A program made the position numbers and the translations under genes. The notes below the pieces were generated by a model. It saw only the letters and a list, made by a program, of their open reading frames with translations, made no database searches and was not told the origin of the DNA. A DNA stretch of 64,000 nt from Bugula neritina (taxonomy: Eukaryota > Animalia > Bryozoa), in NCBI GenBank assembly GCA_964035545.1, contig OZ037772.1, forward strand, positions 5,150,233 through 5,214,232, written 5' to 3'. Every line of letters begins with the position of its first letter. Positions within the stretch are counted from its first letter, which is position 1. Of the stretch, positions 46,415 through 60,793 are shown piece by piece.

Positions 46415-46708
46415 ATGGCCATCACCAGTGACAAAGACACATTAAAAGAGTGTCTTCTGAAAAAAGACACAAACGGATTCGAAAAGGCGTTGGAGGATAT
46501 TCCGGATGGGGAGCTAAGAGAGTTTCTGTTACAAGACGCCTGGACAGATCTCTTTAACCAGACTCACATTGGTCTCTTCAGCCTAGTTATTTTATGCAAA
46601 GGTTGGCAATCTTTCTGTTATATTTAACAGCAGGTTTATGTTATAGAATCTCTAACACACTTCACTTATGCAGTACTAAAATATTCAACTATATTCAATA
46701 TATGTTAC

Positions 46709-46799
<91 letters not shown>

Positions 46800-49700
46800 T
46801 AGTTTCTGTATTCTGGTGTGTGTGTGTGTGCGTGCGTGCGTGCACGCGAGCGTGCGTGTGTGTGTTAACTGTTATTTGTGTTTATATCTTATTTTGATGA
46901 TCTTTTATTTGCTCTTATCAATATTTCTGAGCCTTTACAAAATTGCTTTTATCAACAATGCTCTTTCTGTTAGATGCGGAATGGGAGAAAATATTCGAAC
47001 AAGTAATAGTTAAACTCTCAGCAGCTGACTGCGTTTCGATTTTGGAAACAGTTGACTCCAACGGAAACAACATCTTACATTATCTCAACAAACATCAACT
47101 GACCTCTACTGCAAATTTGCTATTAGACAACCTTTCAAAGGAAGTGAAATTTCATTTGATGACAAAACAAAATAAAGATGGAAATACGCCTTTACACTCA
47201 GCTGTAGAAGGAAACAATGTCATTTGGGTTAGAACATATGTCGAGGTGTTAAAAAGCTCCGAACCAGAAGATTTAGAAGTAATTTCTGAGATGGTCAATA
47301 ACAATGGATACAGCCCTCTGCATCTGGCAGTGAGCCAAAGCACACCAGATGTGGTGAAACAATTACTCAGCGATATGACACCATGTCAACGAAAAAAGAC
47401 CATTAAAAAATGTCGTGTTAAAGAATACCAGGAGCTGTGTGCTGACTTAGGTCAGTTTGAGTACATAAATAGAAGGTATAAAGAAAATTCTTTACACTTG
47501 GCAATCAAAAGCAAGCAAGAGAAAATTATCCAAGTCTTGCTGCAAGGTCTCCTATCGAAAGATCTACTCAGCATCATCATGGAGAGAAACTCAGATGGCG
47601 AAACAGCCGTTCATTTAGCAGTAAAGGACGGTTCTTATGAGATGTTGATGTTGATGCTAAAGCCTTTAGAATTAGGTGATCTTTTGGAAGCCCTTGATGA
47701 AAAGGAACGGCTCACCAATGAAAATGTCTTACAATTAATTATTAGAAGAGAAAGAATGGAGATGTTAACACTTTTGATTGAAGTTTTATCTAAAAGTACA
47801 GCTGCACTAACTAACTTTGAAATGCAAAGCTGGCCCAAAAATATTTGTATTGCAGCGTTACGCACAGCAATTGCATTCTCAAATCAAGAGGCATTTGAAA
47901 GTTTATTGAAAGTTGTGAAAAGTATAACAAACTGTTTGACCATTGAAAGGATTGGGGATGAACAAGAAAATCTGCTTCAGTATGTTGTGAGATATGGTAA
48001 TGAAGAGTTACTTGAATCGCTGAAAGGAGTTTTAGATGTAAAAGGGTGGAGTGATGCCTTGTTGTACTGTGACAGGGCAAAAAACAATGCCCTTCAACTT
48101 TCCATTGTCCATGCTAAATTAAAAGCATTACGTTATATGCAAGACACCACTAGTTCAGATCATGAAACTTGGGAAAAGGCTCTCTTTCAACAGAACTCTC
48201 GCCAAAATAACATTTTACATGAAGCCGCAAAGTTTGGCAACTTTGAAATTTTTGAAAAATTTCTGAAGTCATTAGGTGAAGAAAAGCAATTGGAAATTAT
48301 TTCCCAACTAAATCGGACCCAAGAAACAGTACTGCATATAGCTGTGCAACATAGAAACCCAGCAATAGTTGAAAAACTGTTGGACATTTTGAGCAAGGAC
48401 CCTGAGCAGCTCAAAAAAATATATACTTCATCAAACCCAAATACTATCCTACATCTAGCAGTAAGTATTAAGCATGAAAAGATTTCATGTTTTCTACTAG
48501 AAAATCTTTCATCAATTTTGGAAGCAAATTCTGAAGAGATTTTAGAAATTTTAGGCACCGTTAATAAAAGTGGAAACACTGTTCTTCAAGCGGCTGTAGA
48601 AACTGGTTCCACAAAAATCATTGAAAAAATTCTAAAAATACTAAGCCCTAAAACTTGCGAGCAATTACTAACACACTCAAATAAAAACGGGAAAAATGCT
48701 CTCCATTTAGCAGTAATGACAAAAAAGCCAAGTATTTTGAATTTGCTTTTAAACAGTTGTTCATTGATTGAGCGAAAGAAGTTACTAAACCAAGAAGATC
48801 ATGAGAGCTTTACTCCTAGGTCATTAGCCATAAAGTTCCAAATGATAGAGGTTGTTAGCGCTATACTTTACGCGTTGCACAATGAGGAGGTTTCACCTGA
48901 GCACAATGCCCTTCAGGAGGCAATTGGCAGTGCTGACAAAAAAGCATTTATTGAAATTCTGAAGGAGACGTCTCCCCACTTAAGCTCAGATCTCAATGCG
49001 GAAGATCCCTTGATGCACTTGGCCATACAATCAGGCAACCTCCAAATGCTAAAGGTTTTATTGAAGTTTCCAATTCAGAAATATTCTGGACACTCTCAGT
49101 CAAGTATACCATTTGCAGAGCAGGAAAACTCAGATGGTGAAAATGCTATATTTGTGGCAACTCGCCTAAAAAGTGATGAAGCATTGCGATTGCTGCTTGT
49201 CAACCGAATGCCATCTCTTGTTTTCTCTAGGAATAAAAAAGAAGACACTGCATGTCATATTGCAGCTGAGAAAGATGATGTTGAAAGACTGAACATTATA
49301 TTATCATCCCTTGATGCTAACTTAAAGCTCAGAGCGTTAAAGCTATGTAACACTGATAAAAAAAATGTTCTGTGCTCTGCTGTCGGTAGTGGTGGACTAG
49401 AGTGTCTTAAGTACATCATCCGAACAGTTCCTTCAGCACAGGGTTTGGAAGACTTAATTGTAGACCCTAGAGGCACTAGTGCCCTCAAGCTAGCTGAAAA
49501 ATTACATCACAATGAAGCTTTGAGAGAACTTAGTGGCCATGTTAGAGCTCAAAAAGTGCAATACAGTGATCTGGTACCTAAAATTCAACCTGGCAATGAA
49601 CAAGAGGTGGCAGATTTTCTCAAAACTCTGAACGTATCTGAAATGACAAATGTACTTGGGGAAGAAGACGAAAATAAAAGCAATGTTCTGCATGTTGCTG

Positions 49701-52700
49701 CTCAAGTTGGCAATGCAAAAATGATGAGTTTGCTAATTGAAAAGCTTCCAGCAAAACAACAAGTAGAGTTTCTTCAAAAGGCTAATGCCAAAGGTTTCAC
49801 TCCTTTCCAACTAGCCGTGGAACAACAAAATGAATCAGTTGTAAAAGCAATGTTGGAGTTGGCTGCAAAGCACAGTAGCAATGTATTGCTGAAATCCTTC
49901 TTTAATTGTTTACCATCAAATAATCAAAAGAAAATTCTCATGGCCACACCTGAAAGCAAAAGTTTTTTGTTTTACCTTTTAGCTTTGAAAAAAGTCAATG
50001 CGATTGGAATGCTGATAAAAATGTTGCCAGAAAAGGAACGAGTGGATGTCATTTTTCAAACAGATCTAAAGAGATATTCTCTGTTACATCATGCTGTGAA
50101 GCAAGAGAATGCCGATGCTTTAGATAAGTTAATCGAGCTAGTGAAACCAGATGATTGGGAACAGTTTATTACTGAGCAGTCGAACTACCGTGAAAATTTG
50201 ATTGTCATGGCTGTGAAGTTGCCTCAAACCGGCATGATAAGCAAAATTCTGAAACCTCTGCCACAGAATCAGAGAGTTAAAGCTATTTTATCCACATCAA
50301 GTAGGGAGGTAGATGTCATGAAATGCATTATTGAAAACACGAAAATGCTGGAATCATTGCTAATGGAAGCTGCAGAAAGCAAAAAAGGGCAAATCACCGA
50401 CTTATTTGTTCCGTGTGAGTACAAGCATCAAGCAATTGAGCAAGCTTTTTATATGTCGGTGAAGTACCAATGTGCGGAGATGGTGAAAGCTCTGCTAGAT
50501 CTTATGGATCTTGATCAAAGAAGAGAAGTAATTGCTGATCGACAAAATAAAAAAGGAAACAGCATTTTTCACATTTTATCTAGTTCTAAAAATTTGGAAA
50601 TGATCAGGATGTTGCTTGAGTCGCTCTCACAATTACCACAAAGACAAAAACTTGGAGTCATTTGTTCAGCCAACAAATATGGATACAACTCAGTTTCTTT
50701 AGCGGTGGATAAAGACATAGGAGCTTTGCTTGAGTTGCTCAAGAAGAGCGCGCCATTACCATCAGACTTACGGGAGAAAATTGAAAATGAAATTGAACGA
50801 CCCGTTGTAAAAGAAGAAAGCAATTCCACTTCTGAGGAACTGCTAAGCTTTCTGGATGATAGGCAAAAGACAAGTTTATTGATCCAGCAACTCCGTTTTC
50901 GTGCCGTCGAAACTAAGAAAGACAGCTTTCTAAAAGTAACAGGATGGTGTTCCTCTTTTGCTGAAGATTGTTCAGCTTTGCAATCCTTTTCTATTCCCCA
51001 TCGAAACCTGATGCATATTGCACTCAAAATAAATTCAATGAAGAGCGATGAAGCAGATAATCAGGTAAAACGTTTTGAATTAGTGTTGGAGCAGTTGAAC
51101 ACTAGCGAGATCGAACATATGCTTACACAAAAAGATGGCGATGGATTTTACGCTCTGGAACTATCTGTTATACATCTTAACCATCGCGTGCTGTCTCAGA
51201 TTTTTGCAAAAGTAAGCCCAAGATGCATTGTACAGGTTCTTACACAGCGTAATATTCGCCAAGTCAGCATTCTTGAGATTGCAGAAGAATTGCACCGGGA
51301 TGTGAAAACTGTGTTCCAAGATATTCCTACTGAGAAACAGTGGGACGTCAAAGTCCTCCTTTTACAGAAAGCTATAGAGTTAGAAAACAGCTCCCTCCTG
51401 GAATTGATGTGCACCAACTTTGAGGAAACAGTAGTTGGTGAGCTTCCTATGCTAAAAGAGAACTTTAGTATGTCTCAATCACAGATAAGTCTGTTGAACA
51501 CCGTGAGCGATACATACGTAATACCCGCTCCTCAGCTTAAAGCTAAATGCTACGCTGTTTTAATTTATGAATCCAGTTTTGAAAATGAAAAAACCTGCAT
51601 TTACCAGCTATTAAAAGACATGGGATTTGAGACAGCATGTTGCAAATGGGACAAAAAAGATGATAGAACCGGGATATTTGATAACATGGCTATCGATGTA
51701 TGGAAACCATGCTCATTGCTACTGATGTTTGTGTTGGGAGACAGAATAGCTGGAAGTGATAAAGTTGCGCTACAAACTCTGGAGGCTTTACACTCGTGTC
51801 CTGAAACCCCAATAGTAAGTATTGAAAATGTAACTAAGTTTGTAACCATAAAAATGCTTTTACCCCAATGCTAATATCATTTAAGTTGGACTTCCAAAAT
51901 AGTTATTCCAGCTAAGAAAAAACATTTTGCCACTTGATTCAGGATTAAATTTTCCTAAAAAGTATTCTATTATCTGCATAACTAAATTTAGCTAGCTTAT
52001 TAAGAATATCAAACTTTTTATTATGAGACTTTCCAAATTATATTCAATAAATTTAGTTATACAATTGCAGCAACAAACACACTAAAATTAAACAAGTAAC
52101 TCGGATTAAAAAAACTGATTCTAATATTAAAGCTTAATAAATTTCAGTAGTTAGCAATACTCTAGTTTCAGCAACAAAACTATGCGAAGCAAAACGTTTC
52201 AGTTTCTCAAAATTTTAAGTGCACTAATAACTTTTGTAAAACACTTTTTAATGTATAATATAATGAAATATATAGCATAAGCAAGTAGTAAAATGTTTGG
52301 TATATGTTGTAATAAAAACACTGTTGATTTGTGATCTTTTGTAGGTGTTTTTCTATGAGGCATCGAATTTGGAGACTGAAAGAAAAATAATTTCTAAGAG
52401 AAAGCATTCAGCTCTGATTGGTGCTAAAGCTAGTCAACAGACTGATGGAACCTTTCTAAGACAAGTAGTTCAAGAACTCAAAGCTTCTCAGGACAAAGAT
52501 ATTGTGAAATTGGGTTTGCAAGTTGCTCAGCGGTTGGGTGAACCTGTGGAATACTGGTCCTGGCTGCTAAAGACGCCAAGTCTGCCTTCTTCATTTGGCG
52601 TCGAAGGTAATTTTAAATACACCTTGCTCATGCATTGTGATGGAGTGTTTTGCTGATGGTGTATGGTGTAAGCTTTAAAAACTTGAAATTGTATGATAAA

Positions 52701-55049
52701 TGAATTAGCATATTATATTGCGCCTATAATATATAATTAGCAGATGTAATTTAAAGTTATTGCTATTCAAAATTAATTCTGTTTTCAATTTCAGAGGCAG
52801 AGGGCGAGTTTTCGAGTGACAGTTGTTCCGAGATGACAGATGACAGTTCTGAGTTTGATTGGCAACCTATACCATCTGAAGTCTACCAAAATATTTCCGA
52901 GTATGTTCAGTCTTTTTAAAGAAAGTAGATTATGTCTAATACATATATAATTGCCTTAAAATTTGTTTTTATAGAGAAGTATATTGTTGTCGCTGTATAA
53001 ATAATGTTTAAATTATTATCTATTTTCTTTCTCAGTTGAACAGTACTCTATTTTTCGTTTACTCCTGTAGAATCTGCTCAAGACACAATGTGAAAAACTT
53101 TGCGCTCACACAAGACCCTGGTAACTGGCAAAATATAGTAATCGGTGTTGAAAACAAAACAGAAGACTTAGAAAAGGACTTTAATAAGTTGAACAATGAC
53201 TTTGCATCAGAAAACATTGGCTTTACTATTACAGTTGAAACCAGTGGTTCCCACCTTTACACTAAGTTCCACGCACCTGCAAACTTAAAACGTGAAAAAT
53301 GGGAAAACCCAAATTGGGTTAATGCTAGTAGTGATTCGGCATGTGAATTGTTTGTTCAAGCTGTTGAAAGGAGGAGAGTGGCACCAGAAAATTCAGTTTA
53401 TTCAGTTGGCCCTGCCCACGTGGTAATTGATGAGGAGATGCATGAAGAATTTTCCAATGCTGGCCAAATTGAAAATGCTAGACGAGGTGTAGAACAATTT
53501 ACCACCAACCACCGCTGTGTCTTACATCAGCAAGATGATGGTGACAGACTAGACATTGGATATCCGCCATTGATGTGCTATCGGCTTTATTGCTGGGTCA
53601 AGGAAAATATTGACATCAACGATAACGATTCGTGTCCAGATTGTCGGGAATTCGGAAGGAGGATCAACCAGCTACGTATAGAAACACAATACATAGAAAC
53701 GTCAAAAATGCACCAGGAAATTAATGGAAAAGGAAATTTTGATGAAATCAGGCTATGCACTCACCTCATAATGAACGACATGATGTTCCTACCGTTAGCC
53801 AGAGATAATGCTCATGAGTTAAGTAGAGAATTACACTATAATAACATTTATAAAGTTAGCACAATAGGTGAACTTCGTAGCTTACGAGGGAAGACAATAA
53901 AAGTTAATAACTACAAAGGCCGCATAAGTGAGATATTTGTGAAGTATCGCCGCAGTGCTGAAGGTCACAACAACATTTTCGGATTCCATGTTCAATTCAC
54001 AATTACAACTGATGAGTAAGCATATTTACTTGTTCATTTTTAATCAATTTTGAATTAATTGCATTTAGCAAAATATGTCTTAAATTTATATATTAAGCCA
54101 AAAACTTTTCAGTAACAGCAGAATTGCACTTACAGTTGTTGAATATTGTATATAACAATTGAAAACTTAAATTTTTTAATAGGTCAAACCTAACTAATAA
54201 CAATTAGGTAACATTATTCTATCAATGTACTTATTTCTTTCTTGTCACTTTTCCTGTAAAAGCTTGAGAACTGAAAGACGTAATTGGAAAACTGAAAGAC
54301 GTAATTTGAGAACTTTGGTAAAACTCTCTAAAGAGACAAACATTGACATAGGGTCTCGGAACTGGACTAATCAAATGGCTCATTTTCTACAACATATTTG
54401 AACATATAGTAGGGGGCTATAGATATGAGGTTTATTTGAAAGCAATGTAGCTGTTAGCTGTGTGAAGAAAATTATGTTTTCACTAAACTCAAAAACCTTA
54501 GAATTCTATTCAATGTTAGAAATTAAAAATACATAAAATGATAAATAGCCTAAACATTTCAAGCAGTTAAATCAAAAACAAAAAATGTTATCTGAGTATT
54601 TAATTTAAAATATAGAAGTATAGTTTTTGTCTTTTCTAAGTGATTTTTCAGAATTTGGTGCACGGTTTCAATCAATAAAATTGTAATACAACATGAATTT
54701 CCTTAAATAAAGCCAGTGCAGTTTTTGAGTCAGAGTCTGTATGAATTTTCAAACACCCGAGTGTTACAGTACATGATATAATTATAAGTAATGAAACTGT
54801 TATTTCAGCTCATTGGAAAGAGGGGACTGTGGTCGTATTCTCTACCTCAAAGCTAAAAATCCTGAAACAGAAAAGGCAGAATGGCAACCATTGGGCATGT
54901 ATGTGGGAATGAATGAACTGACGCAAAACTTGAAAAGCAAAATTTACCGTGCTGTTTTGCTACACCAAACGTTCAGAGAAATGGAGGAAGATTATCCACA
55001 TCATATTAATGAAGTCCGTCTTTTTGGTGGTAGAAGACATAGACAGTGA
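46415..55049 (+). CDS. Multi-exon gene (~2193 aa): ankyrin-repeat array + pseudo-caspase domain + acidic linker + chymotrypsin-fold (Cys-nucleophile) protease domain. Exons 46415-46601, 46974-51814, 52345-52606, 52795-52900, 53071-54015, 54809-55049
   Basis: All 5 introns are GT..AG with matching phases (1,0,1,2,2). The joined CDS is 6582 nt, open from ATG to TGA. Many ankyrin motifs (GNTPLHSAV, GYSPLHLAV, GETAVHLAV, ETVLHIAV, GKNALHLAV, GFTPFQLAV). Caspase-like motif order at 51542-52590. Protease motifs PAH / NDMMFL / GDCG / LGMYVG in exons 5-6. Confidence 0.85.
46714..46865. repeat. (TA)n then (TG)n/(CGTG)n microsatellites in the first coding intron
   Basis: Direct inspection. Confidence 0.95.
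46974..51814 (+). CDS. Giant 4841-bp exon encoding the ankyrin array and first half of the caspase-like domain
   Basis: 1643-aa ORF without stops; acceptor ctgttAG at 46972-46973, donor GTaagt at 51815. Confidence 0.92.
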
Positions 55050-56249
55050 AAATCACATATCTAAATTTACTCATTTGGTTGGTTTAGTTGAAAATATGAA
55101 TCATGAGAACTACATTTTAGTGTCTCCTTTTTGCTATTTTTGCTATTAAATTTAGATTAACTTCATGTAACATCTATGATTATTTTAATGAACTCTGCGA
55201 CTTATTTTTACAGTAAGATAAATTATGCAAATAGCATCAGTTCCTTCTTACATGACATGACATTGTGAAACCAGTTTTTCAGCTTAAACTTAAAGTGCTA
55301 ACTCCGAGTTGATCAAAAACCTACAATATTTTACTTTGAAGTACATTTCATTTTAAATCATCATATTATTGTGATAGATTTCCTCATGAGGTATACATAT
55401 GTGTGAGTGTGTATGCATTCTCTTATGTTTGTGTGTTAAATATGTTACAACACCAAGTTTCAATGTAGTTGACAGAAAACATTGTAGTTTTTTTATTATA
55501 TGGATGTTATCTATACTATACTAATCTTTAAGTACTAGAAGTACCATTTTAATCTTTAGAATTGAATTAATATATTATATGTTTGTAATTTCACAGTTTT
55601 CATAAAAAGTTTGATTCAACATTTGATTTCAATTGTTAACAGAATGCTGTGCTGGTAATATTCACTATTGTACTAGATTTGTATAATAATATATGCTTTT
55701 ATTGCATCATTTGATTTTTTCTCACCAATTGTTTGAAATTCTTTACACTACAAAATGCTTAGATTATTAAATAAAATGTTGTGTAATGCGCTACAAGTGT
55801 GGTTTTATTTTGGTTTCTCAAACGGTAATCAATCACTGTCTGGTTTAAGTCGCTTTTGTATGTATGGATCTTCTCATCAGCTTTAGTGAAAAATGTATTA
55901 GCAAGCTCCAAAACCCCATTTCTTGCATACTCTAGTATCTTCTCTCTACCATCATTCTTCCTGCCCACTGACTTTCCTCCATATCATCTTTCAAAGCCCT
56001 CTAGTCTATTTGTTCCAACATGTCCATTCAAATCACCCGCCAGTATCAGTTTTTCGGAAGCCGGGATGCGTGTAGTGATTCCTTCCAGTTGGTTCCAGAA
56101 TCGCTGCTTCTCCTCTTCACAACCTTGTTGGGTTGCATACACGGTCACTATGTCGTATGTCTTTTCAGGTGTTACTAATTTTGCTGCCATTATTCTACCA
56201 GACACTCTGTCAGTCACCATTACTTTATCTTTCCACTCCTTAGGCATAT

Positions 56250-56598
56250 TGTAATGGGATTACGTAGTATAACAATGGGGTTGTCCCCTCTTGTATGGGA
56301 ATACTTATAAAGTATGTTCTACTATCCAATCAGAGGGACCGGAAGGCAAGGTTCCGGTCAAGTGACTGTTCGCGGGTTAGCCAGCAGAAACCATGTGTTG
56401 TTGAGAGCAAGGACTCGTAGTAGTAACATGTGTTTGTAATTGATCAGTGTTGTATAATCGTTTGATGTGGTGTTATAATTATGTTTATCGAATTAAATAA
56501 AGGTTATCGTACGCAAGCCAGACTATTGATTGCTAGTTAAATTGACACTAAAATACGCATACAATCCACGCTTGATAATTGCGCTAAAACTCACAACA
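56250..56598 (+). repeat. Gypsy 5' LTR
   Basis: About 8 substitutions and 2 single-base indels versus 61075-61421 (manual count). Confidence 0.95.
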
Positions 56599-56599
56599 G

Positions 56600-56617
56600 T
56601 GGTGGCAGCGGTGGGAT
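56600..56617 (+). promoter_or_regulatory. Primer-binding site, complementary to a tRNA-Leu 3' end
   Basis: Reverse complement is ATCCCACCGCTGCCACCA. Confidence 0.8.
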
Positions 56618-56633
56618 CTTTGCGTATATCAAG

Positions 56634-57555
56634 ATGACAGAAAGAGGCACAAAGCTACCCATTCGGAGGAATGAAGGTGAGGAAGATAACGTTGCTATAC
56701 CTATAGAACCAGAAGTGAGAGTGCATAAGGAATGTTATGAAAAGAAGTACCGGCTGAGGGTGCCCACCTTCTCAGGTGAGGAGTCGGTGGAGCAATTCGT
56801 TCAGGAATTCCAAGATGTAATGGCCGCCCAGAATAGCATTGCTCAAGCTCAGGATGGCACTGTCAGACAAAGCCAAGCCATACGGAGTGGGACCAGACAT
56901 CGACGGGATCTTTGCTTCCCTGCGGGCCCGTTTTGGTATCTCCGCTGTAGATGCACGGGCCCGTCTCCAAAGACTGCGGCGTAATCCTCACACGCCGCTA
57001 CAAGAGCACGCTACCACGGTCATGAGACTGGTGCAGATCGCGTTCCGCGATCTGCCTCAAGTAAACCGTGAGAGGTACACTTATGATGCCTTCGTGCAAT
57101 CCATCAACAACTTGGGACTCCATCACCAACTCCTGGCGAGGGGAGTCACCACGGTCGAAGGTGCACTCGCAGAAGGAGAGGCTTACCTTCTGGCGAGTCA
57201 GCTGCACCGGAACCGTGTGACTTCTCGTCAGGTAGACATGGAGCCCTCCGCTGCTCCTACCGCTCCCAACGCGAAAACTCCAGCGGTGGCCAAGGTGACG
57301 CAGATGACGGTAGCATCGAAGGTCGCACAAATGACCGACATGCTAGCCGAACTGGTCTCCGCCTTGGCTCCTCTCAGCCAGTTAGACACTACCCATGAGC
57401 TAGACGGGCCACAGGTACAGTCACCTGGTAGAGGACACCCCTCTTGCTGGGAGTGCGAAAGACCAGGACACTTCCAGAAACATTGTCCCCGAATTCAACC
57501 AGGGTTAAACTACGACGGCCCGCAAATGCTCCCACATCCGGCGGGCCGCCGATAA
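56634..57555 (+). pseudogene. Gypsy gag (frameshift near 56835)
   Basis: VPTFSGEESVEQFVQEF, capsid-like helices, CCHC knuckle. Confidence 0.85.
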
Positions 57556-57839
57556 ATTCCCAAGGGAGGACACAGTGGCATCCGCCACGCCGGACGTCTG
57601 TCCGACACCTCGCGGAACGGCCACCAGGACGGCAAGCAGGCTGTACAAGCCGCTCTCCGCCGGTGTTCTCAATGCCACTCTGCAACAGGTTCAACAAACG
57701 ACGGACTGCAGAGTCTGCGAGGGGAAAGGCCCAAACACCGCCACATCCTCGACAGCTGGTCCCCAGTCGTCGTCAGAAACCTAACCCCTCCACCAGGGCG
57801 AGGGAGATGAGGTCACCCAAGATACCACTACATCCCCAC

Positions 57840-59658
57840 GAGAGCAGCCTGTTTCTACGAGGACAGATAGCCGGCAAGCCTGCCAAATTCCTGTTAGACA
57901 CGGGCTGCACCACCAACCACCATTCTTCGACACATTCAGCGCTCAGATCTGAAGCAGGTTGGGACCGTACAAAGGCGATCATGGCACTCTGGCAGACGGG
58001 TTGTGCATCCCCTTCTACGGTATTATTGAACTCCCTGGGAGCGTCTGTGACCAGACCATCCAGGAGAGGTTCATCGTCGGACAGCTCCAAGAGGACGCCA
58101 TCCTTGGGATGCCATTCTTACAACGACACGGATGTCGCATCGATTTTGGTAAATCTGCGATGTTTATGGGCGGCAGGGAGCTCGCCTGTGTCGATAAGTT
58201 TGGCCATCCTCTAACGGGAGAAGAGCCGGTAGTACGTACCTGTACTATGCCCGGCCACTCCAGGGGCGCCGTCCACCGCCAGGTAGACGGTGACCTTACC
58301 TCCAGGACGGAAGTTGTAGAGAGCGCGCACCCAAGCGTCCCACCTGCCCGCAGCTCTAACCAGCTGACACGGAGAGGAAAGATCTCAGTGCCATGCCTCC
58401 ACTCCCCCTCGGAGACGGTGAACCTACCACCCACCTCTCCACCGAGCTGTACTCCTTCTGTTCAAGAAGGTAACAGCAGGCCATCGGGGGAAACCGCGCT
58501 GAGAAGTCTTCTAGAGAGCCTGTCTCTAGGGCAGAGGACTGCCTCACCCCACGCCCCGCACAGCCCGGAGACTCGTGGGGGAGAATCAGACGGTTGTGTA
58601 GATAACAAGAAGCGCCAAGAGACGGCCACGTTACTACACAAAACCGAGGCTGCACCTCACCTTGGGGACCCTGACATGCCCCCAGAGATGGCACAGGACC
58701 TCCACGCCGAACCCGTCTCAATCAATAGCGTCAAGGAGCTACGACACCTACAAGAACATCTTCCGGGAGTGGTAGCCGACGTCTATCAAATAAAACGGGA
58801 AGGGCGACGACCCAGTGACAAACAGCGGAAGCTGGGCTGCGCCAAGTGGCAGCTGTACTGCCGACATTGGAACGCACTGCAAATCAGGGCCGGATGGTCT
58901 ATTGACCATATCTTTGGCCGCTAACCACTACCAGCCAGACCAAGAGAGGACCCTCTGTCCTGCCGCCATCCGCCGGGCATTGATAGAAGAGGTACACCAA
59001 CAGGCTCACGGGGGAGCCCAACAGGTGCTCACCAAACTACAACTCTGGTGGTATTGGCCTAACATGGAGCGTGAAGTACGGCGCAGAATTAGGCAGTGCC
59101 GAGTCTGCCGGGCCAGTAAACACGGCCGCCCTCCTAAGAAGGGGGGGGCGGCGAAGGCAAAATGCAGAGAGGCCCGGGCAGACGGAGACTGCTGACCTGG
59201 TCGACAAAACGCCCAGGATGCAACCCAAAGTTGTGGCGAGGCAGGAAAAGCCACACCCGTTCAGGGAAGTGCGCTCATCGCCTTCAGCGTCCAAGCTGCC
59301 GCCACCATTTCCTAGGTCAGAAACCGACCTGGAAGTGCAAAACCCCCCCACGGGAGAGGCTCTGTACGGAGATGCTGGGGAAGCTCCATTTGTCACAAAC
59401 TGGCTGGAAGCACCACCCAGGAGACGTGACCGTCCACGGGTGAGTAAACCGCCTTGGTTGGGGACGACACCCCGAAAACGGTGTTCTAGGCAAACCCCCG
59501 CGTACCTCAAGGACTTACCACGTGCCGTTCAGGGCGCGGTCAAACGTCCTAACAGGTACCTACGGGGAAGAAGGCAAAACATGGGAGTTATGAACACCAC
59601 GGGAATATCAACTTTTGCCTCGGCGGAATCTCAAAAGAGCTTAATACGCCGGAAGTAA
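57840..59658 (+). pseudogene. Gypsy pol remnant: protease, integrase Zn-binding domain and C-terminal tail
   Basis: FLLDTGC..DAILGMPFL and HHCC motifs; several frameshifts; no YxDD motif. Confidence 0.8.
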
Positions 59659-59893
59659 TAAGTCCTAGCCACGTTTCACAACCACGCTGCTCGCTCTTCT
59701 ATCGCATTGATACAGCTCTGAGTAGACGTACGTAGAAATCATAAACATACCACTCTCGTTCACAATGGCTTGCCAAGAATCGAGAGGTGAGTTAGTTATG
59801 TTTTTGGTACGAGGACTAAACTGTATTAATCAGCTTTACTGTAACAGAATAAGCTGGAGACTCGGTAATAATTTTTAGTGGTGGAAACTCACA

Positions 59894-60793
59894 TTGACTC
59901 TAAGACTGAACAGTCTGTCACAGCAGTGTGTGTTTTCGATCAACTATTCGTTAACTGAGTCTCACGAGTATCTAATTGAGTTAAGTACCCACCAGGCTGT
60001 ATACGCCGGTCGTACTCAGTGTACCCTCTTTACGCTGTTATACTCTTACAGATCACACTCAATCGACCAACTTCGGGTCACAAGATCTACCCCCCTCTCC
60101 TCCTTGGATAACGGACCGAAAACAGACAACGAACTGCCCGTGGCACTGCGCCGAAGACATAAATGGGTGTCACGACGGACGGAGCGACAAATTGAAGAAG
60201 CCTGGGGACCAATTGGCTCACAACGAACCTGCCACGTGTGTTATGAGGAGCTTCCCTCACACCAAGGACTGCGGCTGCATGTGAATGTACACTTCTTACT
60301 ACGCTTCTGTCCGTGCGGATTTCACGACGTATACCCATACCTTATCGTGGCACATATGATGGACTGTTTCGCAGGCAAAGGCTATGTAGTGGACGCGGAC
60401 AATTACGATCAATACCTAGAAGCGGTCAAACCAGTGGTTAAGAAGGCTTTAACCTGGGCCGCATTATCCTCCGGGTTTTATACAATGCTAACAGCCGCCC
60501 GTCAGAAATCCCCTATGGTAAAAACGGTCGCTGCAATCATACCCCGGCCAGACAACACCCCCATGGAAGCATCAGATTCTCCAGGAGAAGCGACGCCAAC
60601 TCCAACCAGGCCTAACCGACTAGCAACCGTCGAGGTAGGACTCCTACGACTGCAGGATGAATTTACCCAATTGGCCCCCGACTTACTCAGCACTACAATG
60701 AGCCTTAGTGAACTGAAGGGCTCAGTGGGATGCCTTAAGCGTAGACTACGTGCACGGCAAGCACGACACTGGACTCAGTCCCTGCAAAACTAG
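59894..60793 (+). CDS. Extra Gypsy ORF: Zn-finger-like region + coiled coil (start uncertain)
   Basis: 299-codon open frame between pol and the 3' LTR; CHVC..LRLHVNVH..CPCG..H..C; C-terminal heptads. Confidence 0.65.
   Translation: MTLRLNSLSQQCVFSINYSLTESHEYLIELSTHQAVYAGRTQCTLFTLLYSYRSHSIDQLRVTRSTPLSSLDNGPKTDNELPVALRRRHKWVSRRTERQIEEAWGPIGSQRTCHVCYEELPSHQGLRLHVNVHFLLRFCPCGFHDVYPYLIVAHMMDCFAGKGYVVDADNYDQYLEAVKPVVKKALTWAALSSGFYTMLTAARQKSPMVKTVAAIIPRPDNTPMEASDSPGEATPTPTRPNRLATVEVGLLRLQDEFTQLAPDLLSTTMSLSELKGSVGCLKRRLRARQARHWTQSLQN

Follow-up and report, generated by a model that had tools for sequence, protein, structure and literature searches.

A six-exon ankyrin-repeat gene ending in a protease domain

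The 64,000-nucleotide (nt) window analysed here, a stretch of AT-rich eukaryotic DNA on contig 8 of a 216-Mb genome, contains a six-exon ankyrin-repeat gene whose last two exons encode a protease domain at the end of a 2,207-residue product. Coordinates throughout are those of the window, and all parts of the gene lie on the + strand, where the protease region appears as two open frames (53036-54019 and 54813-55049). An initial annotation of this region had proposed a cellular chymotrypsin-fold domain with a 3C-like His-Asp-Cys triad. The motifs that it quoted (YSVGPAHVV, NDMMFLPL, RGKTIKV..GRI, RGDCGRILY and PLGMYVG) are all present on the + strand, and their coordinates are correct.

Exon 1 (46415-46601) supplies the start ATG and 62 codons plus 1 nt ahead of a GT donor at 46602. 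Its phase-1 join to 46932 keeps the frame open; this junction lies outside contig coverage and is a predicted one. On inspection, the N-terminus of the product does not look like a signal peptide. Exon 2 (46932-51814) encodes an ankyrin array of ~1,600 residues followed by an alpha/beta module, the rest of which is encoded by exon 3 (52345-52606), and exon 4 (52795-52900) encodes an acidic, serine-rich linker. Exon 5 (53071-54015) contains a predicted small alpha/beta N-subdomain, the complete first beta-barrel and the opening half of barrel 2. It is separated by a phase-2 intron (54016-54808, GTAAGC...TTTCAG), positioned 7 codons ahead of the nucleophile, from exon 6 (54809-55049), which provides the nucleophile loop RGDCGRILY, the last strands of barrel 2 (PLGMYVG, IYRAVLL), a C-terminal helix (FREMEEDYPHH) and the stop codon (TGA at 55047). 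Phase-2 joining of exons 5 and 6 yields ...TITTDDSLERGDCGRILY..., and the six exons joined form 2,207 codons in an open frame, with GT..AG at every border.

Splicing was assessed from Logan contigs of four sister-organism runs (X1-X4), aligned to 51000-55200 at ~92% nucleotide identity. These contigs lack the introns and show the joints 51814>52345, 52606>52795, 52900>53071 and 54015>54809, all GT..AG. The first two joints are found in contigs of runs X1-X4 and confirm the donor at 51814. Single contigs of X1 (1,641 nt) and X2 (1,611 nt) run from 51532, inside the ankyrin exon, and reach 54015 after crossing three GT..AG joints, and the last joint, 54015>54809, is present in contigs of X1 and X3. 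Because the contigs splice 52900>53071, exon 5 begins at 53071, so that the start of the initially annotated region is a true splice acceptor.

The intron between exons 5 and 6 has the same position and phase in the five paralogues that were inspected closely. In the sister-organism orthologue (L030 2830-2852, compared with window 54005-54016), 15 extra coding nt directly precede the conserved phase-2 donor, encoding GEGSIR instead of D; the linker ahead of the nucleophile turn therefore differs in length among close relatives. Across exons 5 and 6, comparison with this orthologue gives 0.166 synonymous (dS) and 0.070 nonsynonymous (dN) substitutions per site, a dN/dS of 0.42, with substitutions clustering away from the catalytic motifs.

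Structure models predict a chymotrypsin fold

We modelled the full domain with AlphaFold2 (AF2) on residues 66-452 of P0017, an uncharacterised, full-length 452-residue homologue from Watersipora subatra, using a 26-row alignment (predicted local distance difference test, pLDDT, 77; predicted template modelling score, pTM, 0.73). When mixed exon pieces were aligned with MAFFT, the GDCG hairpin was set on the similar I-x-I-G...G-x-L hairpin of exon 5, and adding anchor rows did not prevent this. The exon-5 and exon-6 sets were therefore aligned apart, which leaves the C-terminal third of the full-domain model dependent on two sequences. In Foldseek comparison with the PDB, this model matched the factor B protease domain, rice NARROW LEAF 1 (NAL1) and senecavirus 3C with probability 1.0. 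The top VIA match was NAL1 (8hau_B; Z 15.0 over 223 residues, root-mean-square deviation (rmsd) 4.4, 14% identity), followed by HtrA1 (Z 12.3), SGPB and alpha-lytic protease (~12), and FAM111A and DegS (11.6). A VIA Z of at least 8 was reached by 939 of 999 chains, and all listed rows are PA proteases. In the model, a short helix that comes after a strand begins with the His, a strand opens with the Asp, and GDCG forms the turn leading into three strands and a C-terminal helix, as in the chymotrypsin layout.

A second AF2 model, of exon 5 of the window alone with 37 rows (pLDDT 82.3), likewise returned PA-clan proteases as all of its best 50 matches. Its VIA alignments cover DegS 55-196, HtrA1 182-323 and SARS-CoV-2 Mpro 14-139, ending 5-6 residues before each nucleophile, and the exon 5 boundary coincides with the end of these alignments. 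In a split-chain test, the products of exons 5 and 6 scored 0.57 against 0.00 for the best control, a result classed as 'weak support' and obtained without alignments at pLDDT 38-59; contact agreement across runs was at least 47% and partner pLDDT at least 57. The mark for this test is attained by 51 of the 78 solved complexes, compared with 2 of the 108 mismatches; a score of 0.60 or below occurs in only 5 of the 78 solved complexes and in all 4 mismatches that passed. Taken together, the models indicate a two-barrel chymotrypsin (clan PA) fold. The gene is cellular, as the initial annotation had proposed, and contains introns.

Sequence searches did not recover this relationship. Pfam searches of the exon translations and of P0017 gave no match at E up to 10, including to Trypsin (PF00089), Trypsin_2 (PF13365) and Nal1_C, and PDB sequence searches with single sequences and with a 26-member profile gave either nothing or spurious ribosomal and tRNA-ligase matches. 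The Nal1_C hidden Markov model (HMM; PF25819, gathering cut-off 26.1 bits) had no match at E up to 1 in a six-frame search of the genome, a weak test in that the control genomes were also silent. The proposed link to NAL1 is thus structural only.

A conserved triad and a candidate zinc site

The predicted catalytic residues are His1929 (53417-53419, codon CAC, in YSVGPAHVV), Asp2049 (53777-53779, codon GAC, in IMNDMMFLPL) and Cys2135 (54828-54830, codon TGT, within GGG GAC TGT GGT at 54822-54833). They follow the trypsin order that the initial annotation gave them, and each falls within the canonical clan PA element: after a strand for the His, at a strand start for the Asp (in both models), and in the G-D-x-G turn for the nucleophile. 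The secondary-structure context of these motifs agrees with that of TAAH, DIALL and GDSG. Residues H125, D209 and C305 of the P0017 model correspond to H1929, D2049 and C2135 of the window product, and the Asp-to-nucleophile distance is 96 residues here versus 94 in NAL1, whose triad is H234/D291/S385 (PMC12012508).

Both His and Asp are invariant in the 26 aligned sequences of the first set and in all 37 exon-5-type sequences, as is one Arg among the 37. In the 21 exon-6-type sequences, the nucleophile column contains only Cys or Ser, and the Gly that follows is invariant. The possibility that the Cys is a private substitution or a base-call error, which the initial annotation had left standing, is ruled out: the orthologue (L030/L031) retains TGT at this position, 13 intact paralogues have TGY, and the Watersipora protein also has Cys. 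Shared among all of these, the putative Cys nucleophile is real and old. The position that corresponds to chymotrypsin Asp194 can vary, since one intact Cys-type paralogue (L035, contig 6, 10.833 Mb) has GHCG rather than GDCG.

Two hairpins of the second barrel resemble one another: I-K-V-N-N-Y-K-G-R-I...F-G-F-H-V-Q-F in the tail of exon 5 (~53890-54000) and G-D-C-G-R-I-L-Y...P-L-G-M-Y-V-G in the head of exon 6 (54809-54910). This likeness, close enough for MAFFT to superpose the two repeatedly, may reflect an internal repeat inside barrel 2.

Between His and Asp, four residues at 53633-53764 form a candidate structural zinc site: C2001 and C2004 of CPDC (codons at 53633 and 53642) and C2042 and H2044 of LCTH (codons at 53756 and 53762). 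These columns are conserved across the family (C2001 in 21 of 21 sequences, C2004 in 20 of 22, C2042 in 25 of 25 and H2044 in 22 of 26), giving the pattern C-(P)-x2-5-C and then C-x-H four residues ahead of the Asp; in the window product, a helical hairpin insert specific to it separates the CPDC pair from the LCTH pair. The initial annotation had suggested metal binding by a Cys/His-rich segment here. Two of the motifs that it named, HRCVLH and CYRLYC, are not conserved, and the CPDC cysteines belong to the conserved CxxC...CxH set. This cluster ahead of the Asp strand probably holds a structural zinc. The loop carrying the site has pLDDT below 50 in the homologue model, as might be expected of a site that requires metal.

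Zinc-stabilised chymotrypsin-like proteases occur in viruses, as in enterovirus 2A, which also uses a Cys nucleophile, and hepatitis C virus NS3, with a ligand set of the Cys3-His type. Both of these enzymes have two ligands in barrel 2, beyond the nucleophile, whereas all four candidate ligands of the predicted site here lie between His and Asp in barrel 1.

Cysteine and serine nucleophiles within one family

An exhaustive phmmer search of 1.84 billion representatives returned 23 proteins, nearly all of them exon-sized assembly open reading frames (ORFs). One, P0008, is a leucine-rich repeat protein matched through 'LFLNDMQF' and was rejected as spurious. The remainder include P0017, with AGDCGC at the nucleophile turn; P0032 (KAF6039761.1), a hypothetical Bugula neritina protein of 597 residues with PGHSGS; and P0018, a second hypothetical protein of Bugula neritina. 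On these matches, the window was assigned to a cheilostome bryozoan that is a close relative of the recorded sources without being identical to them. A homologous-protein search with the 452-residue homologue and the family profile gave only 2-3 proteins and no annotated full-length orthologue, and the same search with the end of the ankyrin exon gave no match.

A six-frame search of the genome to which the window belongs identified ~20 copies, which were then read exon by exon. Thirteen intact paralogues are of the Cys type, 12 with GDCG (verified at L002, L036 and L040/L041) and one with GHCG, and the codon is TGY in all. Five are of the Ser type (GDSG in three, GQSG, and a divergent SDSGAPV), with AGY in all codons read; one Ser paralogue lies on contig 3 at 21.647 Mb. 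This comparison of Cys and Ser among homologues had been put forward as a check in the initial annotation, and it excludes that all homologues have Ser. Three further copies are decayed. The putative protease family is thus expanded in cheilostome bryozoans, with at least 18 intact copies in this genome plus the members from Bugula neritina, Watersipora and metagenomes.

Several Cys-type copies form a tandem cluster on contig 8 at 8.81-8.86 Mb (L022/L040, L023/L041 and L026/L044), and a further copy lies on contig 1 at 14.04 Mb (L025/L043). Among the decayed copies, L026/L044 lacks the GDCG turn and L043 lacks an intact exon 5.

Four members from other assemblies have GDSG with AGC, GDSG with AGT, GDSG with TCT, and GDCG with TGT, the last from a metagenome (L050). 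Codons of the classes TCN-Ser, TGY-Cys and AGY-Ser therefore coexist at the predicted nucleophile of a single family, neighbouring classes being one base apart. Two sister sequences from ENA metagenome assemblies, L048 (2463-2474, TCT) and L051 (1684-1695, AGT), have Ser codons separated by two base changes, via Cys or Thr.

Maximum-likelihood trees were built from 19 and 24 full domains with midpoint rooting, and contain several long branches. In these trees the Ser lineages diverge first, and one group comprises all 16 Cys rows, Watersipora included, together with two nested AGY-Ser rows. The TCT sequence pairs with the AGT sequence (97/92). Three changes of nucleophile state are needed on the best tree; the well-supported branches alone require fewer. 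As judged from these sequences, the predicted nucleophile has switched between Ser and Cys within the family through single-base steps.

Comparison with known PA-clan proteases

In the models, the family is structurally nearest to intracellular PA proteases of the NAL1/HtrA/FAM111A type. NAL1, which it matches best in structure (Z 15.0, 13-14% identity over 223-238 aligned residues), is a PA-clan protease that is likewise intracellular, is not secreted and has an additional region at its N-terminus, and Nal1_C is carried by language-model and shape neighbours of the family in the Atlas. NAL1 differs in using Ser385 as its nucleophile and in lacking both the CCCH cluster and an ankyrin fusion, and its HMM misses the family. 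HtrA/DegS, SGPB and alpha-lytic protease share the two-barrel core (163-181 residues, rmsd 3.1-3.5, Z 11.6-12.4), but HtrA/DegS and the bacterial S1 proteases are secreted or periplasmic Ser enzymes with PDZ domains or pro-regions and have no sequence-level match to the family. Human FAM111A (Z 11.6 over 186 residues), a trypsin-like antiviral restriction and replication factor, resembles the family in that its PA-clan protease is intracellular and forms the C-terminal end of a larger protein, and it is implicated in cell-intrinsic defence; it differs in its nucleophile, Ser541, and in its unrelated N-terminal parts, and sequence homology is not detectable.

The viral PA(C) proteases (picornavirus 3C, potyvirus NIa of tobacco etch virus (TEV), and coronavirus 3CL/Mpro) share with the family the chymotrypsin fold, a Cys in a G-x-C-G turn, a His as general base and the setting of a reducing cytosol. 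This turn, typical of picornain 3C-like enzymes (MEROPS C3, C4, C30), is present in the window as GDCG at 54822-54833. Unlike the viral enzymes, which are parts of polyproteins, family members are spliced animal genes, here a six-exon host gene with an ankyrin array. As in trypsin, they have Asp as the acid, a residue that is invariant and lies in an NDxALL strand, and they are structurally nearer to cellular enzymes. The G-x-H strand that supplies the S1 histidine in 3C is also missing: the downstream strand that the initial annotation had read as this signature, PLGMYVG, has no His in the column in any of 21 sequences and is better described as the general PA-clan strand. The term '3C-like' therefore describes the chemistry only; viral structures match no better than cellular ones, and nothing indicates viral ancestry.

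According to a published account, cellular PA proteases use serine, and viruses use both Ser and Cys (PMC4576821), in agreement with the view of the initial annotation that cellular members of the fold nearly always have Ser. Textbooks and reviews likewise confine the cysteine versions to viruses. A literature search for a described cellular PA-clan cysteine protease found none in the library covered, which is not proof of absence.

The ankyrin array and the alpha/beta module

Residues 1-500 of the exon-2 ORF match Pfam Ank_2 (102.7 bits, E 1.6e-29). The adjoining alpha/beta module (51416-51814 and 52345-52606) has no Pfam match at E up to 10. By Atlas features, the named clusters closest to it all belong to TIR_2, TIR or SEFIR, at 0.86-0.89, values under the 0.9 line that serve as a lead only. 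A pseudo-caspase reading of 51542-52590 is not supported by Pfam, and the Atlas features lean weakly to TIR instead (0.89, again a lead only). An ankyrin-TIR-protease architecture, if true, would alter the reading of the whole protein.

A second ankyrin ORF lies elsewhere on contig 8 (12,338,428-12,340,797; L046 2929-5298), 3 kb upstream of another Cys-protease paralogue. It encodes 789 residues of near-identical, homogenised 48-residue ankyrin units (Ank_2, E 4e-85), and its N-terminus resembles exon 1 of the window gene. As a lead, the combination of ankyrin array and protease may thus recur in a second paralogue. Long (TA/ATAT)n microsatellites, translated as IYIYIY within ORFs, stand beside the ankyrin exons of both ankyrin-linked paralogues, at 46700-46800 in intron 1 of the window gene and at L046 5319-5750.

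Catalytic activity and alternative explanations

We consider it likely that the domain is an active clan PA endopeptidase with the triad His1929-Asp2049-Cys2135, carried by a cytosolic ankyrin protein. The protein would be ordered as ankyrin array, small alpha/beta module, acidic linker and C-terminal protease. The His-Asp pair would activate the thiol in the GDCG turn for attack on the substrate carbonyl, and the backbone NH groups of Gly2133 and Cys2135 would hold the oxyanion, an arrangement also found in viral 3C, NIa and 3CL proteases and, with Ser, in trypsin. The reducing cytosol would suit a Cys nucleophile.

Several points count against this view. Catalysis and the convergence of the three triad side chains are predictions, for which the models provide alignments at the level of the fold and of residue ranges. 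The full-domain model is that of a homologue 25-32% identical to the window product, with two sequences covering its C-terminal third, and sequence comparison gives no tie to any curated protease family, whether through Pfam, the Nal1_C HMM or the PDB. The contigs that document splicing come from a sister organism, and their run type is taken as RNA only by guess. The dN/dS of 0.42 appears fairly relaxed, and the immune or sensor role proposed below derives solely from architecture and gene-family expansion.

The domain could instead be a pseudo-protease that has kept the chymotrypsin fold as a catalytically dead binding or scaffold module, like the serine-protease homologues of invertebrates. 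Its activity is, after all, predicted; the dN/dS would fit, the adjoining alpha/beta module without a Pfam match may be a degenerate enzyme domain too, and a recent nucleophile switch could be inactivating, given that Cys-to-Ser exchange costs TEV protease ~10^4-fold in activity (PMC4576821). Dead homologues usually shed triad residues, however. In this family none of 37 sequences has lost the His or the Asp, and the nucleophile position, set between G-D and G, allows just the two catalytic options. The Cys state is also common to the Bugula-like and Watersipora lineages, and so is old and maintained. On balance we regard a dead enzyme as unlikely. We find it very unlikely that the family arose as an endogenous viral element, through capture of a 3C/3CL-like cysteine protease from an RNA virus and later acquisition of introns and host domains. 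Such an origin would accord with the viral provenance of all PA-clan cysteine proteases described before (PMC4576821), with Foldseek matches to picorna-like polyproteins (E 4e-6 to 1e-3), and with SARS-CoV-2 Mpro drawing level with DegS for the truncated exon 5 model. Against it, viral matches do not surpass cellular ones (TMq 0.25-0.33, compared with 0.41 for NAL1); NAL1 leads all other structures by 3 Z units, and the nearest shapes in the ESM Atlas are hypothetical mollusc proteins, one cluster of which partly carries Nal1_C. Ser-type members diverge first under midpoint rooting, the phase-2 intron is conserved, there are no viral genes nearby, and the S1 histidine motif of 3C is missing.

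Two further explanations concern the gene model and the fold assignment. Most family members look stand-alone (P0017 with 452 residues, P0032 with 597), and the junction of exons 1 and 2 is a predicted one; the protease exons might accordingly be a separate gene, joined to the ankyrin array only by reading neighbouring ORFs together. This is more improbable still, as the X1 and X2 contigs span 51532 to 54015 over three joints, the X3 contig joins 54015 to 54809, and the six-exon frame is open. Finally, with neither a Pfam nor a PDB sequence match, the short motifs could resemble protease motifs by chance in a domain of some other fold. We give this almost no weight, because two independent AF2 models yield PA-clan proteases only and because of the invariance seen across the family.

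Proposed role of the ankyrin-linked protease

For the active endopeptidase that we favour, we infer a role as an intracellular sensor-effector protease, in which the protease effector would be tethered to an ankyrin solenoid that binds a ligand or target and would act in intracellular signalling or in innate immunity or allorecognition. We base this on the 1,600-residue ankyrin solenoid, the second ankyrin-linked paralogue, the lineage-specific expansion with decayed copies and the moderate dN/dS. Trypsin-like peptidases are recurrent effectors in such systems (PMC8195603). The ankyrin fusion of some members suggests a new sensor-effector design.

A broader proposal, which we put forward more tentatively and at somewhat less than even chances, is that these genes are the first family of chymotrypsin-fold cysteine proteases to be encoded by cells, active with either nucleophile and preserving the TCN-Ser/TGY-Cys/AGY-Ser path, with several members tethered to fast-evolving ankyrin arrays and serving as sensor-effectors in the innate immunity or allorecognition of a colonial animal. 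In 1988, Brenner reportedly proposed this single-step path as the reason why serine proteases use two classes of serine codon, and the TGT, AGY and TCT codons among the further relatives bear on his two-serines argument. The 13 Cys and 5 Ser intact paralogues within one genome offer natural matched pairs for nucleophile exchange in the chymotrypsin fold. More generally, the intracellular NAL1/FAM111A-like group would gain an uncharacterised family of proteases that lacks a Pfam model and probably has a zinc site.

Sequence surroundings of the gene

Just downstream of the gene, retroelement ORFs occupy 55759-57555. The minus strand carries an endonuclease/reverse transcriptase-like fragment, and the plus strand a gag-like ORF that includes a CCHC knuckle. 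Over the stretch 56000-60000, GC content rises from 0.30 to 0.55.

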